Assembly (NCBI GenBank): GCA_021613535.1
Contig: CP075493.1
Span: forward strand, 13,082,001-13,146,000
Reading direction: 5' to 3'
Origin: Adineta vaga
Taxonomy: Eukaryota > Animalia > Rotifera
DNA length: 64,000 nucleotides
In this document: one piece after another, positions 30,397 through 62,664 of the stretch
Position numbering within the stretch: position 1 is the stretch's first letter
How the letters are laid out: every line of letters starts with the position of its first letter
Translations under genes and position numbers: made by a program
The notes under the pieces: generated by a model
Seen by the model: the letters and a program-made list of their open reading frames with translations, nothing else
Databases searched by the model: none
Told to the model about the DNA's origin: nothing

Positions 30397-30762
30397 AAAT
30401 GACTTTACTATATTCTCTCATTTGCCTGGATCAAAAATTATTTTAAAAAGAATCAAATAATGTTCTTACAGCTTCAAGATAAAGTATACAAAATTTTTCT
30501 TGCTAACATTGCGATGTTATAACACGAACATTATTTACGTATATTTATAATTTGTTTGTATTTTAATTTTTTTCTATCGAATGAATGGGAAAGAAAAAAA
30601 AAAGATTCCCATCAAATGGGAACAGTTTCAAAAAATATCTCTGTTATTTCATTGACGTCAGATAATATTTAAACGAAAATAACATAATTGAGAAAGAATG
30701 ACGTGAAATGCAAGAAGATAAGACAGATCTAATCCATGTTAGACCTTTAATAGAATGTGGTG

Positions 30763-30769
30763 TATAAAA
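30763..30769 (+). promoter_or_regulatory. Candidate TATA box of the DUF2059-like gene
   Basis: TATAAAA ~60 nt upstream of the ATG and retained in copy 2; weak evidence in AT-rich DNA. Confidence 0.35.
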
Positions 30770-30827
30770 ATCGAATGCATTTTACAAAAGAATATTCATT
30801 TTATTATTCACTTTTAACAAAATCAAA

Positions 30828-31307
30828 ATGTTTATTCGTTTATACTTGATCACGATGGGTATTGCTTTATTTATGGCAACTGATGGCAAACCAATACAAA
30901 ATCAAAGATTGACTCAACGTATCAATACTTTACTTGATTTAATTAAAGTTGAAAAAAGTTTCGAAGAAATTCCAAAAATGATGGCCAAGTATATTCGTTC
31001 AACGGTGACAGAGAAATCTCTAATATTAACGGCGATTGAAGAGTTTTTCTCATTCAAATCATTACGTCCTCAAATTGTTGAGCTCTATCGTGAAGTTTAT
31101 ACACCATCGGAAATAAATGCAATGATCAAATTTTATTCAACACCATTAGGAAAATCAGTGGCTGATAAAGACATAAAACTTGACCAAGGTTATGATCGTA
31201 TTTTAGAAGAACGATTCAAAGAACAGCAGCCACAAATAGAAGCATGGTTCAGTGAACAACGAGATGCGATGGAAACACCAAATATATACGATGAAGATAA
31301 AAATTAA
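30828..31307 (+). CDS. Secreted DUF2059-like protein, copy 1, intronless
   Basis: Signal peptide; IVELYREVYTPSEINAMIKFYSTPLGKSV matches the DUF2059 consensus Y...FT..EL.....FY.SPLG. Confidence 0.85.
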   Translation: MFIRLYLITMGIALFMATDGKPIQNQRLTQRINTLLDLIKVEKSFEEIPKMMAKYIRSTVTEKSLILTAIEEFFSFKSLRPQIVELYREVYTPSEINAMIKFYSTPLGKSVADKDIKLDQGYDRILEERFKEQQPQIEAWFSEQRDAMETPNIYDEDKN

Positions 31308-32119
31308 TACATGGCTCGATTGAAATACTTGAAGCAGATTTTCTCATCTTCCATTTGATCGAATAATCGAGATTTTTCTTTAAAATTTTTGAAATCTTAA
31401 TCCAATAAATTAATCATGAAACATGATAACATCTAAGTTATCTTTTCAAGAAGGAAATTTCATTCTCATTTACATAGACAAAGTTGCATACCTTGAGAAC
31501 GGCAAAGGTAGAATATTGTCAGCTATATTTTATTGACGTCATACAGAAATACAATCAATCTTTACTTAACGACACAATGTCTAATCATTTTTATTTAAAT
31601 TCGTTTTATTAACTCTGGATAGAAAAGGGAAATGATTTACTTGGTATGTACATCTTATCTGTTGTACGCATGTTTACAAAGAAAACGCTAATCTCACGTA
31701 AAATCTATTACATTAACGAACAAATTTTTCTTTTACTAACACAGTTACACATCTGTGATGAGTTTGAAATTGACTTGAACATGAGAAGAAGGAGGAGTAT
31801 TCTCATGATCTATTTCGATAATATTTCTTTCAGCAAAATACATGGATGACACCGAGTTGATATGATAGTTTCTGCTTGATTTTCTCATTCATATTTGTTC
31901 TCAGCTGTTAGAGGATGATACACGTCATCCTCTTTAGTTAGTTACATGACTTTTCTTTCGTTCTTCACATATGTTATATATGCTTTTTTTTCTGTTCTGC
32001 ACATATCATATGTTCCATGTTGTCTGTTCTCTTCACCTATGCTTCTACATTTCATCATCTTTCGTTACCTCGACATATTCAATCATGTTTCATCATCTCG
32101 TTACCTCGATGTATTCACT

Positions 32120-32212
32120 TGATTTCATCATTTAGTTGATTGTTCACTGATATCTTCTCGTGATTTCATCATTTAGTTGATTGTTCACTGATATCTTCTC
32201 GTGATTTCATCA
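32120..32212 (+). repeat. 41-bp tandem duplication present only in duplication copy 1
   Basis: TGATTTCATCATTTAGTTGATTGTTCACTGATATCTTCTCG twice here, once in copy 2. Confidence 0.9.
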
Positions 32213-32664
32213 TCCACTGCATTGTTCTAGTCTTTCCCTCTTTGTGTTATCATCGATCCCTCGATCTCTCGCTCATTGTGTTCACTTGCTATAAATACTG
32301 CGTGATTTTTAGCAATAAACATTCATTCATTCATCTATCAGTCTCATTTGCTCTTCGAGCGACCCGCTCACATCAGCATAAGAGAATGATTCTGATCTTG
32401 AGCATAATACATAGCAAAAAAAGAAGATACACTAAATTGGAAAAGAGAACAAGATAAAAAAAAGATTTTCTCAAACGATAAATACTCAAACATTTCCCTA
32501 GGAATTATACTGAGTGAGGTCATAATCCCATTACCCGCGGTATCCATAAAAAAGCAACCAACTGACCACGTTACCCTATGCGGTATCCACTTCTCATAGT
32601 TCACTATTGCCTCTACAGCAGTAAGAAGCGTACCAACTATACTATGCATATCGTTACCCCAATA

Positions 32665-32895
32665 TCTGACTATATCCTGAAAGCTGAGGAATGTGAGTTG
32701 ACTTGGTGTATCCATCTTGATACTCAGTGTCTGAGTATATCCTGAAAGCAGAGGAATATGAGTTGATTTGGTGTATCCATCTCGATACTCAGTGTCTGAC
32801 TATATCCAAAAAGCTGAGGAATGTGAGTTGATTTGGTGTATCCATCATGGTACCCGGTATCTGACTATACTCTGAAAGTTGAGGAATATGTTTTG
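32665..32895 (+). repeat. 65-bp subterminal tandem repeat (~3.5 copies)
   Basis: Units start at 32665, 32730, 32795 and 32860; core GAGGAATRTGAGTTGAYTTGGTGTATCCATC. Confidence 0.9.
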
Positions 32896-33145
32896 ATTTC
32901 ATTCAAACAACTCTTACGACACTAACTTTTTTCTTTTAGTGACTTTTAATCTGTCCTGATAGTTAGGAGCAACTGTGTGTTGTAAAATGCACTTATGAAT
33001 CAGATAGTAGCGATAAATTTTTTTCCGGGCGTAGTTTCATATGACACTTTAGTGCCTTCGTGTGGGTTGGCGAAGACGAAATGATATTTGTTATTCAGTA
33101 GTCGATTGGTAAAAGATCTGTGTGATTTCAGTGCAGTTTCGGTTA

Positions 33146-33410
33146 CCGAGCACCCTCACTTGTTGCTTTGCCCACCGATCCCGCTTTCCGAGCACCCTCA
33201 CTTGTTGCTTTGCCCACCGATCCCGCTTTCCGAGCACCCTCACTTGTTGCTTTGCCCACCGATCCCGCTTTCCGAGCACCCTCACTTGTTGCTTTGCCCA
33301 CCGATCCCGCTTTCCGAGCACCCTCACTTGTTGCTTTGCCCACCGATCCCGCTTTCCGAGCACCCTCACTTGTTGCTTTGCCCACCGATCCCGCTTTCCG
33401 AGCACCCTCA
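33146..33410 (+). repeat. Perfect 42-bp GC-rich minisatellite (6 copies plus 13 nt)
   Basis: CCGAGCACCCTCACTTGTTGCTTTGCCCACCGATCCCGCTTT repeated without mismatch and without spacers. Confidence 0.95.
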
Positions 33411-33539
33411 AATATTTGCTATTCAGTTAGTTTCTCATGTTTTAGATTAGTTTATATGAATTTTCGGTTAGATGGTAGACATGGAAAAGTTTGATTTATT
33501 GTACAAAAGATATGAGAGAGAAAGGCAGATTGTGAGTAG

Positions 33540-35594
33540 CTATGAGGTTCGATAGTCGTATACAGAAATGTTTTTTTTCTTACAATTCATGAAATTAAAC
33601 AATAAAAGATAAAAGATTTTACTTTTTGGAAAAGAGAAGGATGACAATGCATTTTGGTATTTCTTTAATTTAGAATTTGTTTGTTCACAGACAACAGTGT
33701 TTATTTGATTGATATCGGAATATTTGTATGGATTGGTTTGTGCCTGGCACATTGGTCTTGTATGATTGCAAATGTGAAATTTATCAACCAAGAAAGTCAT
33801 TTTGTTTCTATTAATAGAAGTGCATGGATATACATGGATCGAATAAGTAATATACACTTACAATACATCAGTACGCGTTGTTCGATGTATTTGACCATGT
33901 TCAAGACGATGTCGAAATGTAAGTAGCAAACCACATGCATTATCATATATCAAATACTTAGGTAATGGACTACAGAGAAAGAGTTTTGTGTAGGGCTTAT
34001 ATGAATTCTATATACGCAATTAATACTTACACTGATGATGATACGCAATCGATTGTTGTAAATAAACGATGGAGTACTCGTGTAGGTGATTCAGATCTAT
34101 ATAATTCGTTGAAATTCACAATGATACCACAGTTGTACATAGTATGTACTACCCCATAAGATGTTTGACGAGTATAATAACGATCCGTTCTATTTCAGAA
34201 CAAAAATGATTAATTCATATTTTTTATATTCGTGATTACCTTGAAACATTACAATCCCCAACATTATAATCATCTTTGTCCGTCGAACAACGTACTGATT
34301 GAGTATACTCAAGATCAATGTGTTTGGGGCAATACTTTGTGTTCTTCCAGTAGCCTGGATTTTGTTTATCTGGAATCATTTCAGGACGAAAACCACAACC
34401 CCATTCAATATCACCTAAAATTGGCGTCAGAAAAACTTGATAGTTATTTGAAAAAACTCTCACCTAGCTCTTCCGAATGAATGAGTTCCTGCATAAAACC
34501 GCAAATAAAACGATTAGGTTTTTGGAATCCATCGATAACAATGGCTTTGCAACACTGACTATCACATTCAAATTTTAACATGTGACTTGACCAATATACA
34601 ATAAAATCACGTTCTAATTGAGGCAATTGAGAAGCAAAAAAAAGATTACGTTCATCATGATTGCTTATATGATATGGAATGTCAATTTCTGTACTTGTTG
34701 ACAGGAAGAATTTTAATATTGATGTTGAATAAATTAACCAGATGTTTTCAAATAACCGACGTTCCAAAACTGGTGGATCTTTCATTTTAAGATCATTATC
34801 ACGAGCATGTTGCAATAACACTGACGTTATTGTATCGTTATAAGCCCCACAAAAATTTTCGAAGCCGGCGTACTAAAATAAAGTTCTATAGTAAAAAGAT
34901 TTCGAAAAGATGTCAGGAAGATTTGTTCGAGTTCAGAATGAATATTCATATATGATATACAAAGTTAATTATAATATCTTTAACCTACCATATTGATCAA
35001 GTCTGACACATATCGTAATAGAACATCAATATAAAGAACGCATTTACCACCGAAATAAATATACTTTTGATTGTATAAAGATTGGCGATTAACATAACGT
35101 TTTGAACCTTTGATGTAACTATTTGTATGATATTCAATATGACAGCAACGAGCAATGAAAATAACTCCATTATCGATATGATCCATAAGAAAAACGTTAA
35201 CTTTCTCTTTAAACTGTAATTTCAATGGTAGATGACAATGTAAACACGATAATGTAAATGGTTTTATAGTATGTAATGATGCCATTGTAAGAAAATGATG
35301 ATCTTCGGAGTAATTATTGATGATCTTATCGACGTTGTGTGATGAAAATAGATTTAACGAGGTGTTATCTGATTTTAATAAATTCAAAATAGATTGTATC
35401 ATTATGCCATCATATTTGACACCATACGTCAATTGAACCATATTCGATATATCATCGTATTTCTTTGAAATAAGTTCATCCAATTTACAATCCAGAAAAT
35501 ACATTAGATTTAAATGCTGCAGTGGTATTCGTCAATTTAATGAAATAAGAAACATTTCTTTATCATTGATATTAATATCATTATTAGAATTCAT
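33540..35594 (-). CDS. KDZ-family transposase with CxC5/CxC6-like cysteine clusters, 6 exons, one in-frame TGA at codon 21
   Basis: Spliced reading: CLHC...CCHIEYH; FENFCGAYN; LERRLFENIW; CCKAIVIDGFQK; WGC...YCPKH; YNCGIIVNFNELYRSES; YLIYDNACGL; LVDKFHICNH...C...NP...INTVVCEQTNS. These are the D, D, H and E motifs of KDZ transposases. ATG 35594 is in frame with 35504 across TGA 35532-35534. Confidence 0.85.
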
Positions 35595-36059
35595 CTGAAA
35601 ATAAAAAGAAAAGATAATTAGTGTAACATCTTCAATCCAATGAATAAATGTTGTTGTAACGAACTTGAGATGAGAAGGGCTGTGAGATAATGATAGGCGA
35701 TGTATCTGGTGTCTTTACGTAGCAAGCTGCTTTTCATTTACAAGATGAACGCTTTTATAGAAAACAGTAAACAATGAATATCAGTCAAGTATAGCGGTCA
35801 CGCTAGCATGGACGCGTTACAGGTCAACAGAGAGGCCAAATGATAGGTGATAGTGATATATCCCTTTACACTTGTGACTAGTGGAATTTCTGTGAAAAAA
35901 GCTTGATAAACGAATATTAATTTGTAGCTCTTTTATTGATGAACAATATGCAGTTAACAAATAAAAATCGTTAGACAAAACACACAGATAATCACACAAA
36001 TACAAAACAATCGTCACTTTCTATTGTCAAAACAAATGAGAAAGTAATAGGTAAATCGG

Positions 36060-38545
36060 TCAATGCACTAGTTCGATCTTCGAAAATTGTTAAACATTAT
36101 TCTTTTTCTTTTTTGATTTAGATCGTTCTTCATTATATGTTTTTCCTTTTCCAGTTAATTCACGACGTCGTTTTGGACTAGAAACTTCATGATCAAGGTT
36201 GTGCCCAACATCTGTTGACTCATCGGTAACTTCACATGTCACTAGAAATAAAGATACATCATATTAATGGCTATGGGAAACATGTATGTACTTACTATTC
36301 TCTTTATTACCATCCTGAGTGACAACAGACGCATCTGTTAGTTTACGATATCGTTCTTTTGATGGTTGTACAATGGCATCTTTATTCACAATTATTTTGA
36401 AATCATTGTATGGTTTTTGTTCCAAGATTGACACTCCATAAGGTGATAAATAGGTAGTATTTCTAGTATCAACTAAAAATTAAAATATGATTAATTATAC
36501 GAAATATCGATCGTTTCAGTCGCACTTACTCGTTTTCAAGGTATCGTAATACATGTTTATATCGTAAATTCCAAATTTGGTCAATGTAATAGAAAACTCG
36601 ACTGATGCTGATTTGTTTTGTGGAATGTTTTTCAAATAACATTCATGATACGAAGACTTGTTTGCTAACATTTTGTTTTCTTTGATTAATAATTTATAGT
36701 CGATCAATAATTGACATGCCTTATGGACGTCAACCATATTTGTTTTACATGTTTTATTTAATTTAGTGCTTGATAAAACAATCGAATCGGATAATAAAAT
36801 CTTTTTGCATAATATCTTCATATCTTCTGGAATTAATATATCAGATGATGGTGCACATGTTGTCGAAATTACAGATGAAGAAACTATATGATATATAAAA
36901 GTTATATATATTATGCAATGTTCGTGCGTTTTACTTGTTATATTTTGACATTGAATTGAATCAATTATTTGTTCATCATTTGTATTGGTCGAATCAATTA
37001 CTTGTTCAATAACATCAGATAAACAATTTTCAATTACACTTCGAAGAAGCATATTATCACTGAGTGTGGTTGAGTTATTTTCGATTGAAAATTCTAAACA
37101 CAACTGTAAGATATTAGATGCATAAAATGCTGAATATCTTACCGGCATTATCTTCAATCATTGATGGAATATTGATATCTTGAATGATATCAATCGATTC
37201 ACTTGTTATATTATAATCAATTAAATCAGCAACATCTTGAACAACATCTAAATTGATGCAAATGAAAACAAATAAATCATATACGTTTGAGATGCAATCA
37301 TTACTTGTGCATGATGTTGTTTGTTGAATTTGTGGTTAAATAGAAAATGAATCAGTAGTTGATTCTAAATGGAAAAAAATTGCTTAGTTTCAATAACTTT
37401 TACGTTCTATTTCGAACTATTAATTTAGCGACCCGATGTTTTTCTTAAAAGACAATAAGTGTAGATAAAAAAGTCATCTTCAAAAGCAAAACTTATTCAA
37501 GCTTCGAAATAATTAAGTTCTACATTGATCGAAGTAAAATACTATGGATGAGAAAGACGTATACTTTTCGACATGTATTCTGTAACTTTTATCAAATCTC
37601 GAAAGTAATCGTTGAAGAAGATATCTTACCTAAACTTTTTTTTAGAATAGAAGGACTATGAATTTTTTGTTGTATCTTTTCAATCCATGATCGTTGTGTT
37701 GTTAATATATTGTAACCGGTTTCATTTAATAATGATTTATTATCAACACCATGTTTGTAATAATCAAGATATTTTTGTAAGCTAAGTTGATATTCGGAAT
37801 TTAATTTTTTTCGAAAATCTTCAATTTGTTCGTCAGCTGTTGGCTCAGGTAGAATTTTAATCCAACTCTCAATTAATCGAAAAGAACTTTTGACGAATTT
37901 TCCATGTTTAAGAAAACTTTTTTTTTCCAAATTTGCGAGTAATCGTTTTACATCGATGCGATCACGTTTATGATCTCTGAAAAAAATTCGCAATTTTAAA
38001 TTTAATTGTTAAAAATAATATTCTTACTATGAAAAATGCTTCCATACGTTAAATCGCTGATCGAGAAGCAATTAATCGGATATTGAATAATTTTCAATTC
38101 GTTTAATACGTTTTTTTTTGTTATCAATCGAATCGGTACAAAATAATTGAATTGATTGCGGTAATAACAATTTGTGGAAAAAACTAACAGCAATTTTAGC
38201 AGCCGACAATCCAACTTTCATAGATTGAGATGGTTGTTTGTCCACACTAGATATTTGTACTTCATTTAACTCTTTCAAATCAACACCTTCAGGATAAGAT
38301 AATTTGTTTTCGACTTGATTGCGAATAAGAAAAAGTTCAAAACTATATTTCTGAGCAGAGATTCTGTTTTTCATGAACATAAATGATTGGGATAAAATCT
38401 GGATCTATTTATTGTCCTAGATATGAGATATTTACTCAAATAAAACTCTAAATGTTGCATTTATTGTGAATGTAAAAACATTACGATGCTGAATTTGAAC
38501 TAAATTGTTTTTCTAATAGACAATTAATTTCTGTCTTCGCTTCAT
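36060..38545 (-). CDS. Transposon-internal gene of unknown function with two related helical modules; frameshifted, boundaries uncertain
   Basis: ORFs 38072-38380, 38002-38214, 37592-37993 and 36516-37157 plus small exons with GT-AG signals; basic C-terminal motif SPKRRRE; apparent frameshift at a T-run near 38111-38119. Confidence 0.5.
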
Positions 38546-38684
38546 CATTCAACTCACGAACATATATTCACTCTTTCGCTACTTTTTTGAGTTGATTACG
38601 TATCACTCAACAGCTTATATAAACCACTTATATTTTATACTCCTCTATTATCAATAAGAGAACATACGCATATAATTTTCCTTT

Positions 38685-40230
38685 TTAGATATGAATACTC
38701 CGATGAAATAGATTCAAACAATGAATTAAACTTCGAACAAGGAACTGAAATAAACGTTGACTGTCAAGAAAGAGTATGAAATAAATCTTACATCAATGAT
38801 TAAATAAATATTGCACGTACCTTAACATTTCATTTGGATAAAAATAATTGCCAATATTGAGTTTAATTTCATTCAATGTATCCTTTTTGATACAATGGAA
38901 GTTAATTGATTTAATCGATTCTAATACTTTCAATGTGTCGAACATATTTTGTATGATGACAGTAATACGTTCAATTAAGTCGGCTCCGCGCCGTTCACAT
39001 GACTCTACAATAAAGTGTAATAATAAAAACTTCGATTAAAAAAATGTTTACCGGCACGCTTATTTTCTGGAACATTAAATAATCCATCATATGGCAGACC
39101 ATTGGAACGCATTTTGTACAAAATTGGTCGAAGATAATTACTGGTATCGTGATCATATTCATAAACACGGTTACCGATCAGCATTCGTGTGATAAACAAA
39201 TATTCCAAACATGGTAACTCTTCATTCAACAATGATTCTTCATGGATAAAATTTTTCTTCCAATAACCCAATATAATATTCTTTCATACAATCCTAATAA
39301 AATCAATTTGTAGTAGAGTATATTAGATAGAAATATCGTACCGTTGGTTTTACTTGAATCGTCAAAATATTCCAATAATGAAGACCATCGATCACCAGTA
39401 GTTGGAATTAACATTGTAAGACTTTTATCACGAATATCTTTAGAATATGTCATGGTAAATTTCTGAAGTTTGTATGCACCATTGAACGCCGTAGTTAAGT
39501 ATGGTTGAGATTCCTTTGCCTTCGGTGTGCTTGGTTCGAAAAAAGAAAAATCAGTCAAAGGGTGATCTTCGTCACTTGAAATAAATTTCTAAGATTTACA
39601 ATCAAAATCAAAATCTATTCAATATATTGCAAAAGTTATACTTACGGATGATAATTCGAGTTCAACAAGCGATTTTGCTGGTGTAAGATTTTCAAGACAA
39701 GTTGAAACAAATTTATCATTCGAATCTGTTAATTGAGATCGGAAATATTCTTCGACAAAATCGAACGCTTTTCTGATCGGTTTGATATAACCGGATTTAT
39801 GTGATACTGAATGAAAGAATAAAAACTTTATATTAATTTAAAATTATAAATAGATTTACCCGAGTCCTCTCGAAGAATTCCATAAAGCTTTAAGATGGTA
39901 TAATCGGATTTTTCCTTATCATGCAATTTTGTTTCACAAGACCTTAAATGATACATGAACCTGATAAAGTTATGTCAATAATAGTGTCAAAACTTACCAG
40001 TGCATGAAGCTAATCAAAACACACCAAAACAATGTTAATTCATTAAGCTTTCGGCTTCTATAATTCTTGAATATAGACACCAAGTATGGATGATCTGGAA
40101 AGAATTCTTCCAGCGTATGTGATGATGTTAGTAATTCACAAAAATCAACATTCGACGCATCAATTGCGTTTAATTCCTTGCATCGATCACCTCGATGAGA
40201 CATGAAAATTTTTTTAGAAATTATTGGCCT
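38685..40230 (-). CDS. Transposon-internal DUF3987/YfjI-like P-loop protein, multi-exon, one apparent frameshift (~39255); 5' end unresolved
   Basis: Spliced order LYGILRED(S)..HKSGYIKPIRKAF (degenerate Walker A), LTPAKSLVEL, FISSDE (Walker B), YLTTAFNG, LTMLIPTT, NGLYERILYW (Arg-finger-like), GADLIERITVIIQ parallels the DUF3987 motif order. Stop TAA 38685-38687. Confidence 0.55.
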
Positions 40231-41512
40231 AAAATAAAGATTTTTAATTTAGTAACGTATACGCTTAAACGAAAAAAAATCCAGCAAGCTGTTCGTGAAG
40301 AGACCTTGGGCAAATAAAACTGACAATCAATGCTTTGACTCTTGCAATCATTTATATAATTTCTTCGATGAAATAGAGAATGCAAACGATCCTTTTCCTT
40401 CCATCGTCTACGCAGAAGACGATTATCATATGTATTCCATACTTTTTCCGATGCGCTTCTTCTTGCAAAGTCAATTCCTTCTTTTTCTGCTATTTCTCAA
40501 TTCACACTAGACGCAAATGCAACTGATTGAATGTGATAGACAGGAATGGAGAAACAACGATAGTTTTTCTTCCTTCTTTTTACATAAGACTCAAGATATT
40601 GTCGGAACTGAAACGATGAGATTGATAAGAATCAATTTTTCATGCATTTGATATTGTTTATCTTTCAAAAAATTCAAGCAAATACTTTAAAATGAATTTG
40701 TCTAACTAACTGCGTATTGTGAGAGATCGAAATATTGAATTTTTGATGAATAAACAAGAGAACTAATAGAAACCGCTCAAATTTTAAGTAGATAAACCAG
40801 ATAAAGTAATGTGATGAATAACAAAAGAAAGCTATTTTACAAATAATAACTCAAGATAAAGTTCTGGCATTGAATCACTTACCTTGAACTAATATTATAC
40901 AGTTAGAAGACACAACTGTATAAAAGTACAGTATGCTATATATATAGTGTATTTCCTATGTCATAATAATCATACAATAGTCATTGTCTTATCGGTCAGT
41001 CATTTGTAATCGTATGCATATTAAACTGACGGTCATTATTGTTCTTTGCTAATATGCTATACATTTGCATATCAGTCAACAATCATGACATCCGTCATGC
41101 TAAGATTTCTCCCTGTACAATTCAGATGTCATCGACTATACGATAAATCAGCAGATTTTAAAACATTGACGTAAAATAATAATTGCACATATAGAGATGT
41201 AATGAAAGAATGTTGAGCATTTTCTTTACGCGCTCTGAATATTCCGAACATATGAACAAATATTTTACAATCGATTATTACATTAACGCGACACTACTAT
41301 CATTATCATGCATTATTTTCCATTATAATGTAACGACCAAATACATGAATATAAACATACTTATATTGAGTTTGAATTTGAAAGTATCATGTGTAATTTC
41401 TTGTATAAAAGGTTTCGAATATGAATGTAAACGGAATTGTGAAGTGAAATAGGTAATATTATTGCATTTGAAGAATATATCATTTATTCCCGAGGCAATT
41501 AAATCATTATAC

Positions 41513-41614
41513 AAAATCAACTCATATTCCTCAGGCTTGGGTACATAGTTGGATATTGGGATTGAGGTGGATTGAGATGGATACACCAAATCAACTCATA
41601 TTCCTCAGGCTTGG
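41513..41614 (-). repeat. Right-end subterminal repeats (2 copies), inverted relative to the 65-bp left-end units
   Basis: AAATCAACTCATATTCCTCAGGCTTGGG at ~41514 and ~41588. Confidence 0.85.
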
Positions 41615-41763
41615 GGATGGCTGTATTTTTGCTGGCATATTGAAGTCATTACCCTTGGATCGAATATGGTGATATGAATACCCATGTTCTTCCGTTGATC
41701 AGTTTCAGGGTATTGTGACGTTTGGCTGTCGATACCCAGTGTAATGATATTATGACATCTGTG

Positions 41764-43662
41764 TTCTATCGAATGAATGGGAAAGAAAAAAAAAAGATTC
41801 CCATCAAATGGGAACAGTTTCGAAAAATATCTCTGTTATTTCATTGACGTCAGATAATATTTAAACGAAAATAACATAATTGAGAAAGAATGATGTGAAA
41901 TGCAAGAAGATAAGACAGATCTAATCCATGTCAGACCTTTAATAGAATGTGATGTATAAAAATCGAATGCATTTTACAAAAGAATATTCATTTTATTATT
42001 CACTTTTAACAAAATCAAAATGTTTATTCGTTTATACTTGATCACGATGGGTATTGCTTTATTTATGGCAACTGATGGTAAACCAATACAAAATCAAAGA
42101 TTGACTCAACGTATCAATACTTTACTTGATTTAATTAAAGTTGAAAAAAGTTTCGAAGAAATTCCAAAAATGATGGTCAATTATTTTCCTTCAATGGCGA
42201 CAGAGAAATCTCTAATATTAACGGCGATTGAAAAGTTTTTCTCATTCAAATCATTACGTCCTCAAATTGTTGAGCTCTATCGTGAAGTTTATACACCATC
42301 GGAAATAAATGCAATGATCAAATTTTATTCAACACCATTAGGAAAATCAGTGGCTGATAAAGACATAAAACTTGAGGAAGGTTTTAATCGTATTTTAGAA
42401 AAACGATTCAAAGAACAGCAGCCACAAATAGAAGCATGGTTCAGTGAACAACGAGATTCGATGGAAACACCAAATATATACGATGAAGATAAAAATTAAT
42501 ACATGGCTCGATTGAAATACTTAAAGCAGATTTTCTCCTCTTCCATTTGATCGAATAATCGAGATTTTTCTTTAAAATTATTGAAATCTTAATCCAATAA
42601 ATTAATCATGAAACATGATAACATCTAAGTTATCTTTTCAAGAAGGAAATTTCATTCTCATTTACATAGACAAAGTTGCATACCTTGAGAACGGCAAAGG
42701 TAGAATATTGTCAGCTATATTTTATTGACGTCATACAGAAATACAATCAATCTTTACTTAACGACACAATGTCTAATCATTTTTATTTAAATTCGTTTTA
42801 ATAACTCTGGATAGAAAAGGGAAATGATTTACTTGGTATGTACATCTTATCTGTTGTACGCATGTTTACAAAGAAAACGCTAATCTCACGCAAAATCTAT
42901 TACATTAACGAACAAATTTTTCTTGTACTAACACAGTTACGCACCTGTGACGAGTTTGAAATTGACTTGCACATGAGAAGAAGGAGGAGTATTCTCATGA
43001 TCTGTTTCGATAATATTTCTTTCAGCAAGATACATAGATGACACCGAGTTGATATGATAGTTTCTGCTTGATTTTCTCATTCATATTTGTTCTCAGCTGT
43101 TAGAGGATGATACACGTCATCCTCTTTAGTTAGTTACATGACTTTTCTTTCGTTCTTCACATATGTTATATATGCTTTTTTTTCTCTGTTCTGCACATAT
43201 CATATGTTCCATGTTGTCTGTTCTCTTCACCTATGCTTCTACATTTCATCATCTTTCGTTACCTCGACATATTCAATCATGTTTCATCATCTCGTTACCT
43301 CGATGTATTCACTTGATTTCATCATTTAGTTGATTGTTCACTGATATCTTCTCGTGATTTCATCATCCACTGCATTGTTCTAGTCTTTCCCTCTTTGTGT
43401 TATCATCGATCCCTCGATCTCTCGCTCATTGTGTTCACTTGCTATAAATACTGCGTGATTTTTAGCAATAAACATTCATTCATTCATCTATCAGTCTCAT
43501 TTGCTCTTCGAGCGACCCGCTCACATCAGCATAAGAGAATGATTCTGATCTTGAGCATAATACATAGCAAAAAAAGAAGACACAGTAAATTGGAAAAGAG
43601 AATAAGATAAAAAAAAGATTTTCTCAAACGATAAATACTCAAACATTTCCCTCGGAATTATA
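41764..43662 (+). repeat. Direct segmental duplication, copy 2
   Basis: Starts TTCTATCGAATGAATGGG and ends GGAATTATA, as copy 1 does. Confidence 0.95.
42020..42499 (+). CDS. Secreted DUF2059-like protein, copy 2
   Basis: 159 aa, 146/159 identical to copy 1. Confidence 0.85.
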   Translation: MFIRLYLITMGIALFMATDGKPIQNQRLTQRINTLLDLIKVEKSFEEIPKMMVNYFPSMATEKSLILTAIEKFFSFKSLRPQIVELYREVYTPSEINAMIKFYSTPLGKSVADKDIKLEEGFNRILEKRFKEQQPQIEAWFSEQRDSMETPNIYDEDKN

Positions 43663-54053: not shown

Positions 54054-55750
54054 CTAACGTTTCTTGCTTGATGTTGATGGAACAGATGCTACGTTTCCTG
54101 CTATTTTTATTGCTCCATTGTCAGCTTGTTTGGCTCTTCCGCTTGTAGTAGCAATAGAAATCTAAAAATAGAACAGATGCACATTAAAAAATCTTTAATT
54201 AATACATTCATTGGTCTTTTCTCTCTTACGGATTGCCTCGCAGGTTGGTTTTCGACGGACGATTGATTTTGTATATCTTCATCCAAGATTTCTCGAATCG
54301 CTGCCGCAACGTTTGAATGTTGCGATTTCTTCGGCCAGAAACGGTCCACTAATTTTTTTAATCCATCTAACAGGCTTTCTGTGCTGTTGAGACCACGTTT
54401 TGCCTCATCCCTTTGTTGCTCTGCTTCTTGTCGACATCGAGCTTGCTCATTTGCCTCTTCTACTTGACGGTCATATTGTTCATATAATTCTTTTTCCCGC
54501 GCATACCAGTCTTTCTGTTCTCGATTGTGCTTGGCTTCCAATTCACGCCCAGCTTCTTTTTCCTGCTCCAGGTTCTCTTCAACCAGATGGCGAGCCTTCA
54601 TTTCTTGGTGCAGACGGTTTTCAGCCAGAAGGTGAAGTTGCTGTTCCCGTAGCAACTTCTGTTCAGCCAGATGGCGATCTTGATTTTTCCGCTGCAGAGT
54701 TTCTTCGATCTGATGATGTTTTGTTTCTTCAGCTTTCAGAAGCGCTTTGAGTTTTTCTTGTTGATGCTTATCTGTCCTAGATTTTTCTTGCAAAGCTGCA
54801 ATAGTACGTGTATGCGCTTCTACAGTTGACTGTATGTCTTTCAATGCAGTAATTTTCTCTTTTAGTTCATCCCCTGTCTTGTCAAGTAAACTTTGCTTTT
54901 GTTGAAGATCTCTTTGAGCCTGATGAAGTTCGTTTTCCTTTAACGCTCCGTGCTCACGAGCACGTCTTAGCTTACTCATTCCCGTTGCATCGAGTGGAAA
55001 TGGTACGATATCACTGGTAAACATTTCAATGAGCATCGTACGATACTCACTGATCGTAACAAATTGATCGATCAGACTATCATTAGCCGTGTTATAATCA
55101 TCGCGATTAAGTGCACCAGAAAAGAAGATTCCTAACTTGAAGAAGTTGACGATTTCTTTGAAATGTTTATCTTCTGAAAGTTCCGATTTCAGTTTGGCTC
55201 GCTCATCTTCGCTTTTCGATTCGCAGTGGGTAACGATTAAACAAGAATTATTCGATATAGAGTTACCCAAAATGTCGAGCAATAATCGGAGTATTTGAAT
55301 ATCTTGGTCATTAATACCGCATGTAATTGCGATACAGAAGCAAATGACATGACACTTCGTAAATTCACGATTGATACACTCATCGAGGATGTTCAGAATA
55401 TATTCATCGTTACGAGCTTCAAGTTTATCGGTACCACGTTCAACAAAACCCGGCGTATCGATGATGTTGAGCATGACATTCTTCCCGGTAACATGATACG
55501 ACTCGACTATAGGAGATTCTGTACCCGCGAAAAGACTGAAGTCCTCTGGAATAGTCGTTGGATTAACAAGCAACGATTTGATAGTCGACTTCCCAGTACG
55601 TGTTCGTCCCAGGAGTATTATATTCTTCATCGTCGCTTGTGACACTCCATATTCACCATTCTGCTCGTAGTCTTTCTGGATGTCGTCCATCAGCTTTTCT
55701 CTTTTTTCTGCTAGATTGTTGTTCTTACGTACTCGGTCCCGAATCGACAT
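54054..55750 (-). CDS. AIG1/GIMAP-like P-loop GTPase with long coiled-coil tail
   Basis: G1 LLGRTRTGKST, G3 IIDTPG, G4-like VTHCE; E/K/Q-rich heptads. Probable intron ~54162-54229 gives a C-terminus ...SSKKR* at 54054. Confidence 0.85.
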
Positions 55751-56330: not shown

Positions 56331-57901
56331 ATGTCTGCATCACAACCAAGGGTAAACATTTATTTCTAAACACTGCATGTTTCTACTCATTTTGCTTTTC
56401 GTACCAGAAATCGCTCAGAGCACAACAAGCTGACAAAGATGTAAACACACAACGAGAAAAGTATATGAACGAAATTAAAACAGACCATGAAGAATTTGGC
56501 GATTTTCAAATGTCGAAATCGGTCCAAAGGAATGTAATGTTAGTAGGACGAACACGTACAGGGAAATCGACTATCAAATCGATGCTTGTTAATTCAATGG
56601 TCGTTGCTGAAGAACAAAAACTAATGGTAGGTACCAAATTCCCACAGTTCGAGACGTTCCATGTTGCTGTAGGAAAGAAGATTTCTACAGATGAATCTTC
56701 TGAAGATGTGCCTAAAGATGATTCTTCTGAAGAAGAAGATGTGTCTACAAATAATTCTTCTGAAAAGGATATATCTACAACGGAATCGCCTGAAGATATT
56801 GTCCTCAATATCATTGATACACCGGGCTTGTTCGAACGTGGTACCGATGAAATTACACCTCGTGACAATGACATTATCATGCAGGCCATCGAAGCTTGTG
56901 TCAATCAAGAAATTACCAAGTTTCATGTCATCTGCTTTTGTGTAGCAATAACAGTTGGCATTAATGAACAGGATATTCAAGCACTCAAATTAATGCTCAA
57001 AATGATGGGTGATAAAATAGCGTCTAATTCTTGTTTGATCATAACTCATTGCGAGTCAAAAGATAAGAAGCAGCGAAAATCTATAATATCGCAACTGAAA
57101 GAAGATAAGGAATTCAAATTGATCCGACCTTTCTTCAAAATGGGTATCTTCTTTTCTGGTGTACTCAACCGAGACGACTACAAATGCGGTAGTGAAAATC
57201 TCATAGGTCAATATCTCACCGTCTCGAAGTATCGTGCCAAACTTATTAAAATGTTTAGTAAGACTGTCAAGCCATTTCCACTGATTGACACGCTGATTAG
57301 TGACTCAAAACGCGCTTGCGACAACCAAAAATCAACAGCATTGGAACTTGAGCAGACGGAGATGAAACTTCGACACGCAAATGAAGATCTTAAGGACATC
57401 AAAAACTGTCTTCAAGAGAAAGAGAAAGAACTTAATGAAACTCAGAACAAGCTTAAAATTACGGATGCCGAGTTTGAAACGACAAAAAAAGAACTTAAAA
57501 AGAAAGAGACTGATCTAGAAGAGATGCAGGCTCAATTAGAAGACACGAAGTCAGCTGAAACCGGGCTGCAATCAATCATCGCAGACCTCCAAGTAAAATG
57601 CAACATGGATGAGCGCCAAAAGAAAGAACTTGAAGCGAAATTGGAATGGGAAGAAAAACAAAGACGTGAAGCAGAAAAGGCTCGAGAAACTGAAGCAAGA
57701 AATCGACTTATCGCTGAAGTTAAACTTGAGGCAGATGCCAAACTGCGCCGTGAGGAAAAAGCAAAAGAACATGAGAAGTATACAAGAGAAGTGGAAGCAC
57801 GCCAAGAAAAAGCTCGACTACAGAAGGAAGCACAACGGGAGCAAGAAATAGCACAGCAACGTCTGAAAGAGGAGCAAAAAGAAAAATGTTCGATTTCGTA
57901 A
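56331..57901 (+). CDS. AIG1/GIMAP-like GTPase paralog with coiled coil and C-terminal CaaX motif
   Basis: Exon 1 56331-56351 (MSASQPR), intron 56352-56407; LVGRTRTGKST, IIDTPG, ITHCE; ends CSIS*. Confidence 0.85.
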
Positions 57902-60549: not shown

Positions 60550-62664
60550 TTAATTATAAGAAAAATTTGTTTTCACATCATTCGATTTCTTCCACATGAT
60601 GAATGCTTTTAAAGGTTGATTTAAAAAGAAATAAAGTAAAGTAATATTATCATAAAGTGTTGCAAGTAATTGAGGAAATCGATGCCATAATGGAGGATGT
60701 TTAATAATAATCTTTTCAGCATTTAATAGACTCGTTAAAGCTTGAGAAAAATCACCTTTTTTCATCAAACATAAACCAATTTGATATAATAAATCAATCG
60801 ATTGAATTTTTGTCGGATTATTTTCATCGTCGAATTTTTCTTCGATAAGCATTTGTCTAGTTTTTACAAAGACTTCATAAGCTTGAAGAAAATCTCCTTT
60901 TCTCATTAATTGTATACCAGTTTCATATAATCTATCAAAAGATTGATCTGTTGTCAGACTATTTTCATTAGTAGAATTTTGATTAGCTAAATCATGAATT
61001 TTCTGATCCAGCTCCGGTTTGGAAATTTTATTTATTTCTGCAATATGTAATGCATGTTGGTAACATGATACAGCATGTTCAATATTATTTATATTATTCC
61101 AAACATCACCAATATGATTGTAAAGTTCAATTGTTAAGAGATTCGTTTCATCTAATAATGACAAAACAATACCATAGAAAAGAAATGCATCTTCATATCT
61201 CGACAAATGATAATACAAATAACCAATAATCATATGAATAACTACTGATTTTGAATTATCGATACTAATATGACTAATACGAAGATAGGTTTTGTATATA
61301 TCAATTGCTTTTTGAAAACATCCTAAATTACTGAATATAAAAGCAATATAAATATACATCATATTTAGACATGAATTATTTGAAATGAATCGTTCGTTGG
61401 TTAATAGATAGTAATATCGTAATATCAGACGAAAATCATCTGTTTTCATAAATAACGAATGATTATTCTTAAAAATAGGCATATGCTTTTGAAAATCATC
61501 GATTAAATTTTCAATATGTTCAACTATTTCACTATCTAATGTAAGTTCAACAATCCATGTTGATGTGTCTTCTTGTTGAATCGAATCAATTCTAAATATA
61601 GTTCCAACAAAAAATAGAATTTCATTTTCATGTGGCATTGAACTAAAACTTGAGATATCAATAAATGGTCGAAATCTTTCATTCGTTATATGTGGAATAT
61701 GAATTTTAAATAAAGCACTCAGCGGAGCTCCAATTATAAACGCACGAGCAGTTTGTTCATGACGCGACGTTGACATAAATGTATTTGTCGAAATAAGAGG
61801 TTCAATATTTGATTGTAATCGTTTTAGATCATTAGGATTAAGAACTTGTCCTCGATACACAGTCAATGGGCCTATTTCTTTTTGTTTTATTGTTAATTCT
61901 TCAAATTTGTTGTATAAACCTATAAATATATAAAGAAATTTACACATATAACTGATATTTCTTGTACGAAATGCTTTATTTAATAGTCGATATAAGAATG
62001 AATCTTTTGTATACCAATTGAGAATAGTATCATTTGAACATGACTTATCAAAACAATGAATTCGAAATAATTCATTGGGAAAATTTTTATATTCTAATCT
62101 ACATTGATTTAACATGATTTGTTTTAATTCATCCATATTCATGTTATTTCTCTGTTCAATTAAATGGGAAATCAAATATCGATAACAAAATATTGTTAAA
62201 CTGTTGCCACTTAGATTTGTTAAGGTTTGATCAATCTTGTTCTCATACAACGAAGATATATTGATTGATAAGTCATTTGTATAAGTTAATAAAATATCTT
62301 TACGTAATCGATTGATTAATTCATAGAGATTTTCGAATGGACCGACTAATTTAGAATAATCTTGTTTATCCAATTGACTAGTTTCATGTTGTTGTGTTAG
62401 AGCATAAATAGAATGAATTTGAGATAAATCTTCAAAATTTGATAGACATTCTAAATTCATCAGCAGTACAAGTAGAATTTTACGTTCACTTTGAACTTCA
62501 TGTATGTAACTGATACAAGCTTCCATGGAACTAAATTTCTCTAAGTAATCAGCAAACTTTATTAGAGATTTTGGCATGTCACTTGATGAAAGCCAAACAA
62601 CACGAAAATCATCATGATTTTGAGTTTCATCCAATTCAGTCAATGATAAATTGTATTCTTCCAT
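60550..62664 (-). CDS. ADP-ribosyltransferase (R-S-E clade) plus TPR repeat protein, intronless
   Basis: WYTKDSFLYRLLNKAFR, TVYRGQ, FMSTS, ENEILF; multiple TPRs (LYNHIGDVW...AVSCYQHAL). Confidence 0.85.
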   Translation of the reverse strand: MEEYNLSLTELDETQNHDDFRVVWLSSSDMPKSLIKFADYLEKFSSMEACISYIHEVQSERKILLVLLMNLECLSNFEDLSQIHSIYALTQQHETSQLDKQDYSKLVGPFENLYELINRLRKDILLTYTNDLSINISSLYENKIDQTLTNLSGNSLTIFCYRYLISHLIEQRNNMNMDELKQIMLNQCRLEYKNFPNELFRIHCFDKSCSNDTILNWYTKDSFLYRLLNKAFRTRNISYMCKFLYIFIGLYNKFEELTIKQKEIGPLTVYRGQVLNPNDLKRLQSNIEPLISTNTFMSTSRHEQTARAFIIGAPLSALFKIHIPHITNERFRPFIDISSFSSMPHENEILFFVGTIFRIDSIQQEDTSTWIVELTLDSEIVEHIENLIDDFQKHMPIFKNNHSLFMKTDDFRLILRYYYLLTNERFISNNSCLNMMYIYIAFIFSNLGCFQKAIDIYKTYLRISHISIDNSKSVVIHMIIGYLYYHLSRYEDAFLFYGIVLSLLDETNLLTIELYNHIGDVWNNINNIEHAVSCYQHALHIAEINKISKPELDQKIHDLANQNSTNENSLTTDQSFDRLYETGIQLMRKGDFLQAYEVFVKTRQMLIEEKFDDENNPTKIQSIDLLYQIGLCLMKKGDFSQALTSLLNAEKIIIKHPPLWHRFPQLLATLYDNITLLYFFLNQPLKAFIMWKKSNDVKTNFSYN

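Follow-up and report, generated by a model that had tools for sequence, protein, structure and literature searches.

Duplicated DUF2059 genes on either side of a transposon

We analyzed a 64,000-nucleotide stretch of the Adineta vaga genome, C1:13,082,001-13,146,000 (hereafter, the window), in which two copies of a small gene, A and B, each lie within a 1.9-kb block, with the two blocks flanking a DNA transposon as a direct duplication (Table 1). The initial annotation described the genes as 'DUF2059-like'; at 43.7 bits (A) and 46.6 bits (B) against a Pfam cut-off of 23.6 they are full members of the family. An NCBIfam search returned no match for the gene.

Table 1. Coordinates of the duplicated genes, their variable and invariant segments, and the surrounding elements, in window positions.
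Feature	Position	Strand	Basis or details
Copy A, 159-aa DUF2059 gene	30828..31307	+	92% protein identity to B
Copy B, intronless 159-aa DUF2059 gene	42020..42499	+	ORF; Pfam PF09832, E=2.8e-11; in NCBI protein set
Variable patch 1, codons 53-60	42176..42199	+	7 non-synonymous changes, none silent, over four variants
Invariant core, codons 73-114	42236..42361	+	Mostly the Pfam DUF2059 motif
Variable patch 2, codons 115-147	42362..42460	+	17 non-synonymous changes, none silent, over four variants
First 1.9-kb duplicated block, with copy A	30572..32509	.	Self-BLAST, alignment
Second 1.9-kb duplicated block, with copy B	41764..43662	.	Self-BLAST, alignment
KDZ-type DNA transposon between the blocks	32510..41763	.	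Weak KDZ match, E=5.5e-4, below cut-off; other copies exist
428-bp solo-LTR-like element	43098..43525, also 31906-32372	.	TG...CA ends; 5-bp target duplication TCAGC

The non-coding parts of the two blocks differ at 21 of 1417 bases (1.5%) and by indels of 2 bp and 41 bp. Because this divergence is close to the 1.7% that separates homologous A. vaga chromosomes (PMC8494291), the pair may have arisen from two alleles that an unequal exchange between copies of the transposon brought together, or through alternative transposition. The transposon has short imperfect inverted ends, and no 8-bp target duplication was found at its junctions with the blocks. A contig of DNA run X2 spans the junction of the second block with the transposon end; the other junction is uncovered. 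Both blocks carry the solo-LTR-like element, which is thus older than their split. Its internal repeats measure ~36-41 bp, its window copies differ by indels only, with no substitutions, and further copies are found on C5 (two, 95% identical) and on C4 (one, 87%, with a 5-bp duplication of its own). Nine of the 21 non-coding differences fall within 146 bp (31699-31844 vs 42891-43036) and are followed by ~580 bp free of substitutions, which suggests conversion tracts or a mutation cluster.

Several other features of the window were recorded. The left part of the transposon contains tandem repeats of 84 bp (33140-33410) and about 65 bp (32643-32899). Older inverted gene duplications, at about 69-71% DNA identity, pair 7202-8026 with 8585-9407, for which there is no Pfam match, and 54993-55471 with 56804-57282. 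Possible defense genes encode an NHL-repeat/TPR protein (990-2993) and an ADP-ribosyltransferase-TPR protein (60550-62664), and a pentapeptide-repeat gene lies at 4989-5900.

Differences between copies A and B

Compared codon by codon, A and B show 14 single-base differences in 14 codons. Thirteen are non-synonymous (codons 53, 54, 56, 57, 59, 60, 72, 119, 120, 122, 123, 128, and 147), and the sole silent difference is GGC/GGT at codon 20. These counts are the same as those of the initial annotation, as is the number of differences in the 256 bp upstream (four), and the two patches that it delimited (AKYIRSTV to VNYFPSMA and DQGYDRILEE to EEGFNRILEK) are correct. They contain 11 of the 14 changes; E72K and A147S, which went unmentioned, lie outside them. 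The sequence has 382 non-synonymous and 95 synonymous sites, which puts pN at 0.034 and pS at 0.0105. Taken alone, the ratio of 13:1 does not depart significantly from neutrality (Fisher P=0.196; P=0.11 when conditioned on mutation types). The coding changes are clustered, 11 of the 14 lying within two 30-nt windows (P=0.0003), but the flanks are uneven too (9/21 differences inside one 150-bp window, P=0.01), so that clustering by itself is weak evidence for selection, and we dropped it as proof.

Two further variants of the gene

Contigs from public reads (assembler contigs, not raw reads), aligned to copy B, yielded two extra variants, A2 and C. A2, from DNA run X2, matches A except for proline instead of arginine at codon 57 and three differences in the flanks. 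It could be an allele of A, or the arginine of A may reflect a recent mutation or an assembly error. Variant C is identical in two libraries, X15 (2024) and X19 (2013), both RNA by guess; it was seen only in RNA-guessed runs, and X19, which is labelled as another organism, has it at depth 2. It differs from B at 20 bases, every one of them non-synonymous (pS 0, pN 0.067). Twelve changes are private to C, again all non-synonymous, at codons 58, 115, 119, 123, 130, 131, 133, 134 (two), 137, 138, and 145. A single X19 contig bears all 20 differences from B; assembler contigs can be mosaics between patches, and the count of variable sites is independent of whether this one is. A contig of X15 also matches the second patch of B without difference. 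We considered RNA editing as the origin of C and rejected it, given the many change types and their identity in two libraries.

All four variants keep an open reading frame across the covered stretch, with no stops or frameshifts. The B- and C-type contigs from the RNA-guessed runs are confined to the gene and its 3' end, and from them the locus is apparently transcribed. Neither B nor C is present among the contigs of DNA run X2; since B is missing from them as well as C, the contigs drop variants, and the absence of C from DNA is uninformative. The depth of X2 is compatible with four copies if single-copy depth is ~15, as in neighboring contigs, and a single variant tree, ((A,A2),(B,C)), accommodates every informative site. 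This rough depth and the tree together suggest two loci, with A and A2 as the alleles of one and B and C as those of the other. If so, the alleles at the second locus would be separated by 20 amino-acid-changing bases and by no silent change, where the typical Ks between A. vaga alleles is 0.05 (PMC5916493). An artefact in which two alleles were assembled in tandem is unlikely, because three to four variants in a diploid need at least two loci; moreover, independent DNA contigs span the transposon-to-block junction. As a separate matter, a hydrothermal-vent metatranscriptome (X20) holds a 155-bp contig that matches window positions 42566-42720 with one difference at a depth of 549, probably through laboratory contamination with A. 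vaga.

Tests of selection over the four variants

Across A, A2, B, and C, 26 coding bases vary, 25 of them non-synonymous and one synonymous. Likelihood tests on these four variants in our own implementation, with C masked beyond its read coverage, gave an M0 omega of 5.1 (likelihood ratio test against omega=1, P=0.041) and preferred the positive-selection class of M2a to M1a (P=0.020); the locus had been picked from ~1,600 windows for its ratio, and the P values for selection are to be read with that. The initial annotation had named a dN/dS not above 1 in more sequences as the outcome that would speak against selection, and with the added sequences the ratio stays above 1. The probability of seeing at most one silent change is 0.003-0.017 in binomial tests, depending on transition bias, and 0.018 with the observed mutation types kept. 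Within the patches, whose limits were set after the data had been seen, none of the 24 changes is silent against 4.7 expected (P=0.004). Seven of the eight third-position changes alter the amino acid. The core, residues 73-114, has no changes at all (P about 1e-4, with limits likewise drawn after the data had been seen).

The changes private to C are the part of the data that is independent of how the locus was chosen. Their ratio of 12:0 has P=0.02-0.11, the higher value applying once the transversion-rich spectrum is allowed for. They lie nearer to the A/B sites than chance would place them (P=0.007), and codons 119 and 123 have changed twice. The locus also contrasts clearly with an A. ricciae control (Fisher P=1e-4), so ordinary purifying selection does not hold for it. 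For the parent-type gene, a metagenomic cluster gives a pN/pS of 0.6-1.75 from few changes, so over short distances a low pS can arise as noise. The family is not significantly less conserved at the variable sites than elsewhere (P=0.14), and a protein word search and a metagenome scan found no wild-isolate copies of the gene. Overall, the evidence against strict neutrality is moderate and the statistics are modest (P 0.004-0.04).

Diversifying selection on a ligand-binding surface had been proposed from the A/B pair. The selection part of that proposal is strengthened by C, which adds 12 non-synonymous and no silent changes near the same segments, while the surface stays a putative one; the accompanying analogy with host-pathogen effectors is the wrong way round, the rotifer being a free-living host and not a pathogen.

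Paralogs and origin of the gene

The chromosome-level haploid A. vaga assembly (100.8 Mb, six contigs; PMC8494291) contains five DUF2059 genes, namely A and B, a gene on chromosome 3 with 40% identity, and a pair of remoter genes on chromosomes 1 and 4. The named A. vaga paralogs are I4U23_015082, which is the chromosome 3 gene, I4U23_020612, and I4U23_001042. Protein, family, and DNA searches of this assembly revealed no third close copy of A/B; a family match on C6 proved spurious, lying inside another spliced gene. The chromosome 3 paralog matches none of the patch versions at the codon or DNA level. A protein word search with B returned only B itself, and a metagenome scan only a 42% relative. 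The donor paralog with linked silent changes that the initial annotation had named as evidence against selection is thus absent from the haploid assembly.

Identity between the window copies and the chromosome 3 protein is 64% within residues 73-114 and about 30% in the stretches before and after them. In a quick protein tree, with the ends of variant C filled in from B, they group with the chromosome 3 subfamily (SH-aLRT 96) on a long stem of 1.06 changes per site. The chromosome 3 gene is syntenic, by shared neighbors, with an A. ricciae gene, and the A. ricciae copies of this type have a pN/pS of 0.10-0.22, indicating purifying selection. All named relatives are bdelloid (Adineta and Rotaria) and the nearest Atlas clusters are 79-100% bacterial, a distribution that would fit an old horizontal transfer.

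Two metagenome proteins, P0039 and P0091, belong to a further long branch within this subfamily, which may represent another rotifer copy that evolves fast. At L003 2626-3351 and L027 989-3360, the chromosome 3 gene adjoins ORFs that, by eye, resemble the ADP-ribosyltransferase and ADP-ribosylglycohydrolase types; no such ORFs are called at the corresponding place in A. ricciae.

Predicted protein and its variable segments

The N-terminus has a basic residue, a hydrophobic helix (residues 3-17), small residues at 18 and 20, and K21, which is invariant in the alignment; residues 1-20 are likely a signal peptide, cleaved before K21, and the protein is likely secreted. The predicted model is all-helical (pLDDT 72), and its best fold match is 2X3O (Z 9.4, rmsd 2.6, 87 residues aligned), followed by 6F03 (Z 6.9). 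Because the long helix takes a different position, TM-scores reach no more than 0.4-0.5. In this model patch 1 corresponds to the end of helix 41-53 plus the loop to residue 59, and patch 2 runs along the long C-terminal helix 106-148. Along the long helix, the variable sites favor one side, turned ~60-85 degrees away from the hydrophobic face, with weak periodicity (P=0.03-0.10). The two variable segments may together make up a binding surface.

Explanations of the pattern

We regard diversifying selection as probably the best explanation of these observations. A DUF2059 gene of bacterial type would have been acquired anciently by bdelloids, and in the lineage of A. vaga a derived copy on chromosome 1 would have become the two loci that now flank the KDZ transposon. 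The product would be a small, all-helical, secreted protein whose core, residues 73-114, has been held constant while helix 41-53 with its loop and the long C-terminal helix were driven to change on several branches independently. On this account the variable segments would be the binding surface for a changing partner, with each variant recognizing, or escaping, a different version of it.

Among the alternatives, relaxed constraint on a redundant duplicate is unlikely. Under it, the core would be needed for folding or would have escaped change by chance, the rest would drift, and the lack of silent changes would be an accident of small numbers that the scan picked up. In its favor, neutrality (omega=1) suffices for the A/B pair on its own (P=0.11-0.2), the M1a model, which collapses to omega=1, is rejected no more strongly than P=0.02, a conserved paralog is present on chromosome 3, and the case, of only four sequences, was chosen by a scan for its ratio. 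Drift would predict about 4.7 silent changes in the patches and about 20 over the whole gene, the latter figure being the patch rate, 24 changes over about 98 sites, applied to 95 silent sites; the observed numbers are 0 and 1. The intact frames and apparent transcription of the gene also argue against it.

Clustered mutagenesis during error-prone break repair, which could mimic selection by laying down transversion-rich clusters while gene conversion smooths the rest, seems improbable. Bdelloids often suffer DNA breaks, and transversions are mostly non-synonymous. C-G transversions make up 8/26 coding changes against 1/21 flank changes (P=0.03), an excess that is unusual for a genome of 30% GC, and transversions of all kinds number 17 in the coding sequence and 7 in the flanks (P=0.04); the clumped flank differences and the 580-bp stretch without substitution are in keeping with such a process as well. 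Yet the deficit of silent changes persists when the observed mutation types are taken as given (P=0.018 for the gene, 0.004 for the patches), independent branches have changed in the same segments, and those segments are also the most diverged from the distant paralog. Selection for amino-acid change would, moreover, itself yield an excess of transversions.

The alternative raised by the initial annotation, that gene conversion copied the patches from a third and remoter paralog, is very improbable. It would explain the density of the patches (6 changes in 22 nt) and the residues that C has in common with both A and B, and a donor could lie on the other haplotype, which is outside the assembly, the searches having covered one haplotype. 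Against it stand the lack of a close paralog in protein, family, DNA, and protein word searches, the failure of the nearest (40%) to match any patch version, the fit of all informative sites to one tree, and the silent changes that a constrained donor would have brought, of which the patches hold 0/24. We also rejected the gene as target of a diversity-generating retroelement, since 8 C-G, 5 C-T, and 3 G-T differences involve no coding-strand adenine; no template repeat of such an element was found in the window or the genome.

Returning to diversifying selection, the partner is possibly a variable microbial molecule of fungal, oomycete, or bacterial origin, as the pattern of change and the enrichment of foreign genes in the rotifer response to a fungus would suggest, but we put this at somewhat less than an even chance. 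More tentative still, and rather doubtful, is the proposal that an envelope-protein gene of bacteria has been recast as a rotifer recognition or defense protein, which would give this asexual animal an arms-race locus comparable to the MHC. Its variants would then have been kept, as alleles and as transposon-made tandem copies, through coevolution with a microbe.

Comparison with known systems

To our knowledge, neither a function nor a ligand has been established for the DUF2059 family. Its solved members are PA0856 of Pseudomonas aeruginosa (2X3O, 3OAO) and the secreted antigen BPSL2520 of Burkholderia pseudomallei (6F03). The rotifer gene resembles them in scoring above the Pfam cut-off and in its helical fold, and the profile of the A. 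vaga paralogs matches all three structures; unlike them, it resides in an animal genome, and identity is only 14-18%. In Sinorhizobium, the member RgsH is essential and resides in the periplasm (10.1101/2020.02.13.948760); it is likewise small, helical, and exported, the export of the rotifer protein being predicted from its N-terminus. The available portions of the literature that names the family report no diversifying selection in it, and we found no earlier paper on this DUF2059 gene in rotifers.

The bdelloid paralogs, on A. vaga chromosome 3 and elsewhere as well as in Adineta ricciae, A. steineri, and Rotaria, belong to the same family and are also intronless. In A. ricciae the chromosome 3-type gene is found in synteny and evolves under purifying selection; the window copies, by contrast, occupy a long branch, and searches elsewhere turned up no close relative. 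If the arms race is real, their variable sites would mark the binding surface, and they offer a first hint as to which parts of the DUF2059 fold meet a partner.

Foreign genes are enriched 2-3 fold among the A. vaga genes induced by the fungus Rotiferophthora (10.1101/2021.09.04.458992). The gene described here is similar to the anti-pathogen genes of Nowell et al. in being of foreign type, in occurring in A. vaga, and in its likely (predicted) secretion; their case is based on expression rather than dN/dS, and is absent from the literature matching the term DUF2059.

Among host defense families, positive selection is known from MHC, plant NLRs, immune lectins, and inhibitor-enzyme arms races. 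The present locus is like these systems in having recent duplicates and alleles, a dN well above dS, and changes that fall outside a conserved scaffold; it differs in lacking any sequence or fold relation to them, in comprising four variants only, and in being a bacterial-type gene of an asexual animal. How bdelloids keep pace with parasites without regular sex is an old question, on which the published evidence is mostly expression-based or genome-wide. Here, a signature of selection for variety is visible directly in the sequence of a single small locus, a bacterial-type gene in a laboratory species with a known fungal pathogen, and its four natural variants could be expressed and compared. 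Positively selected duplicates are a well-known phenomenon; what is new is the protein family and its setting.
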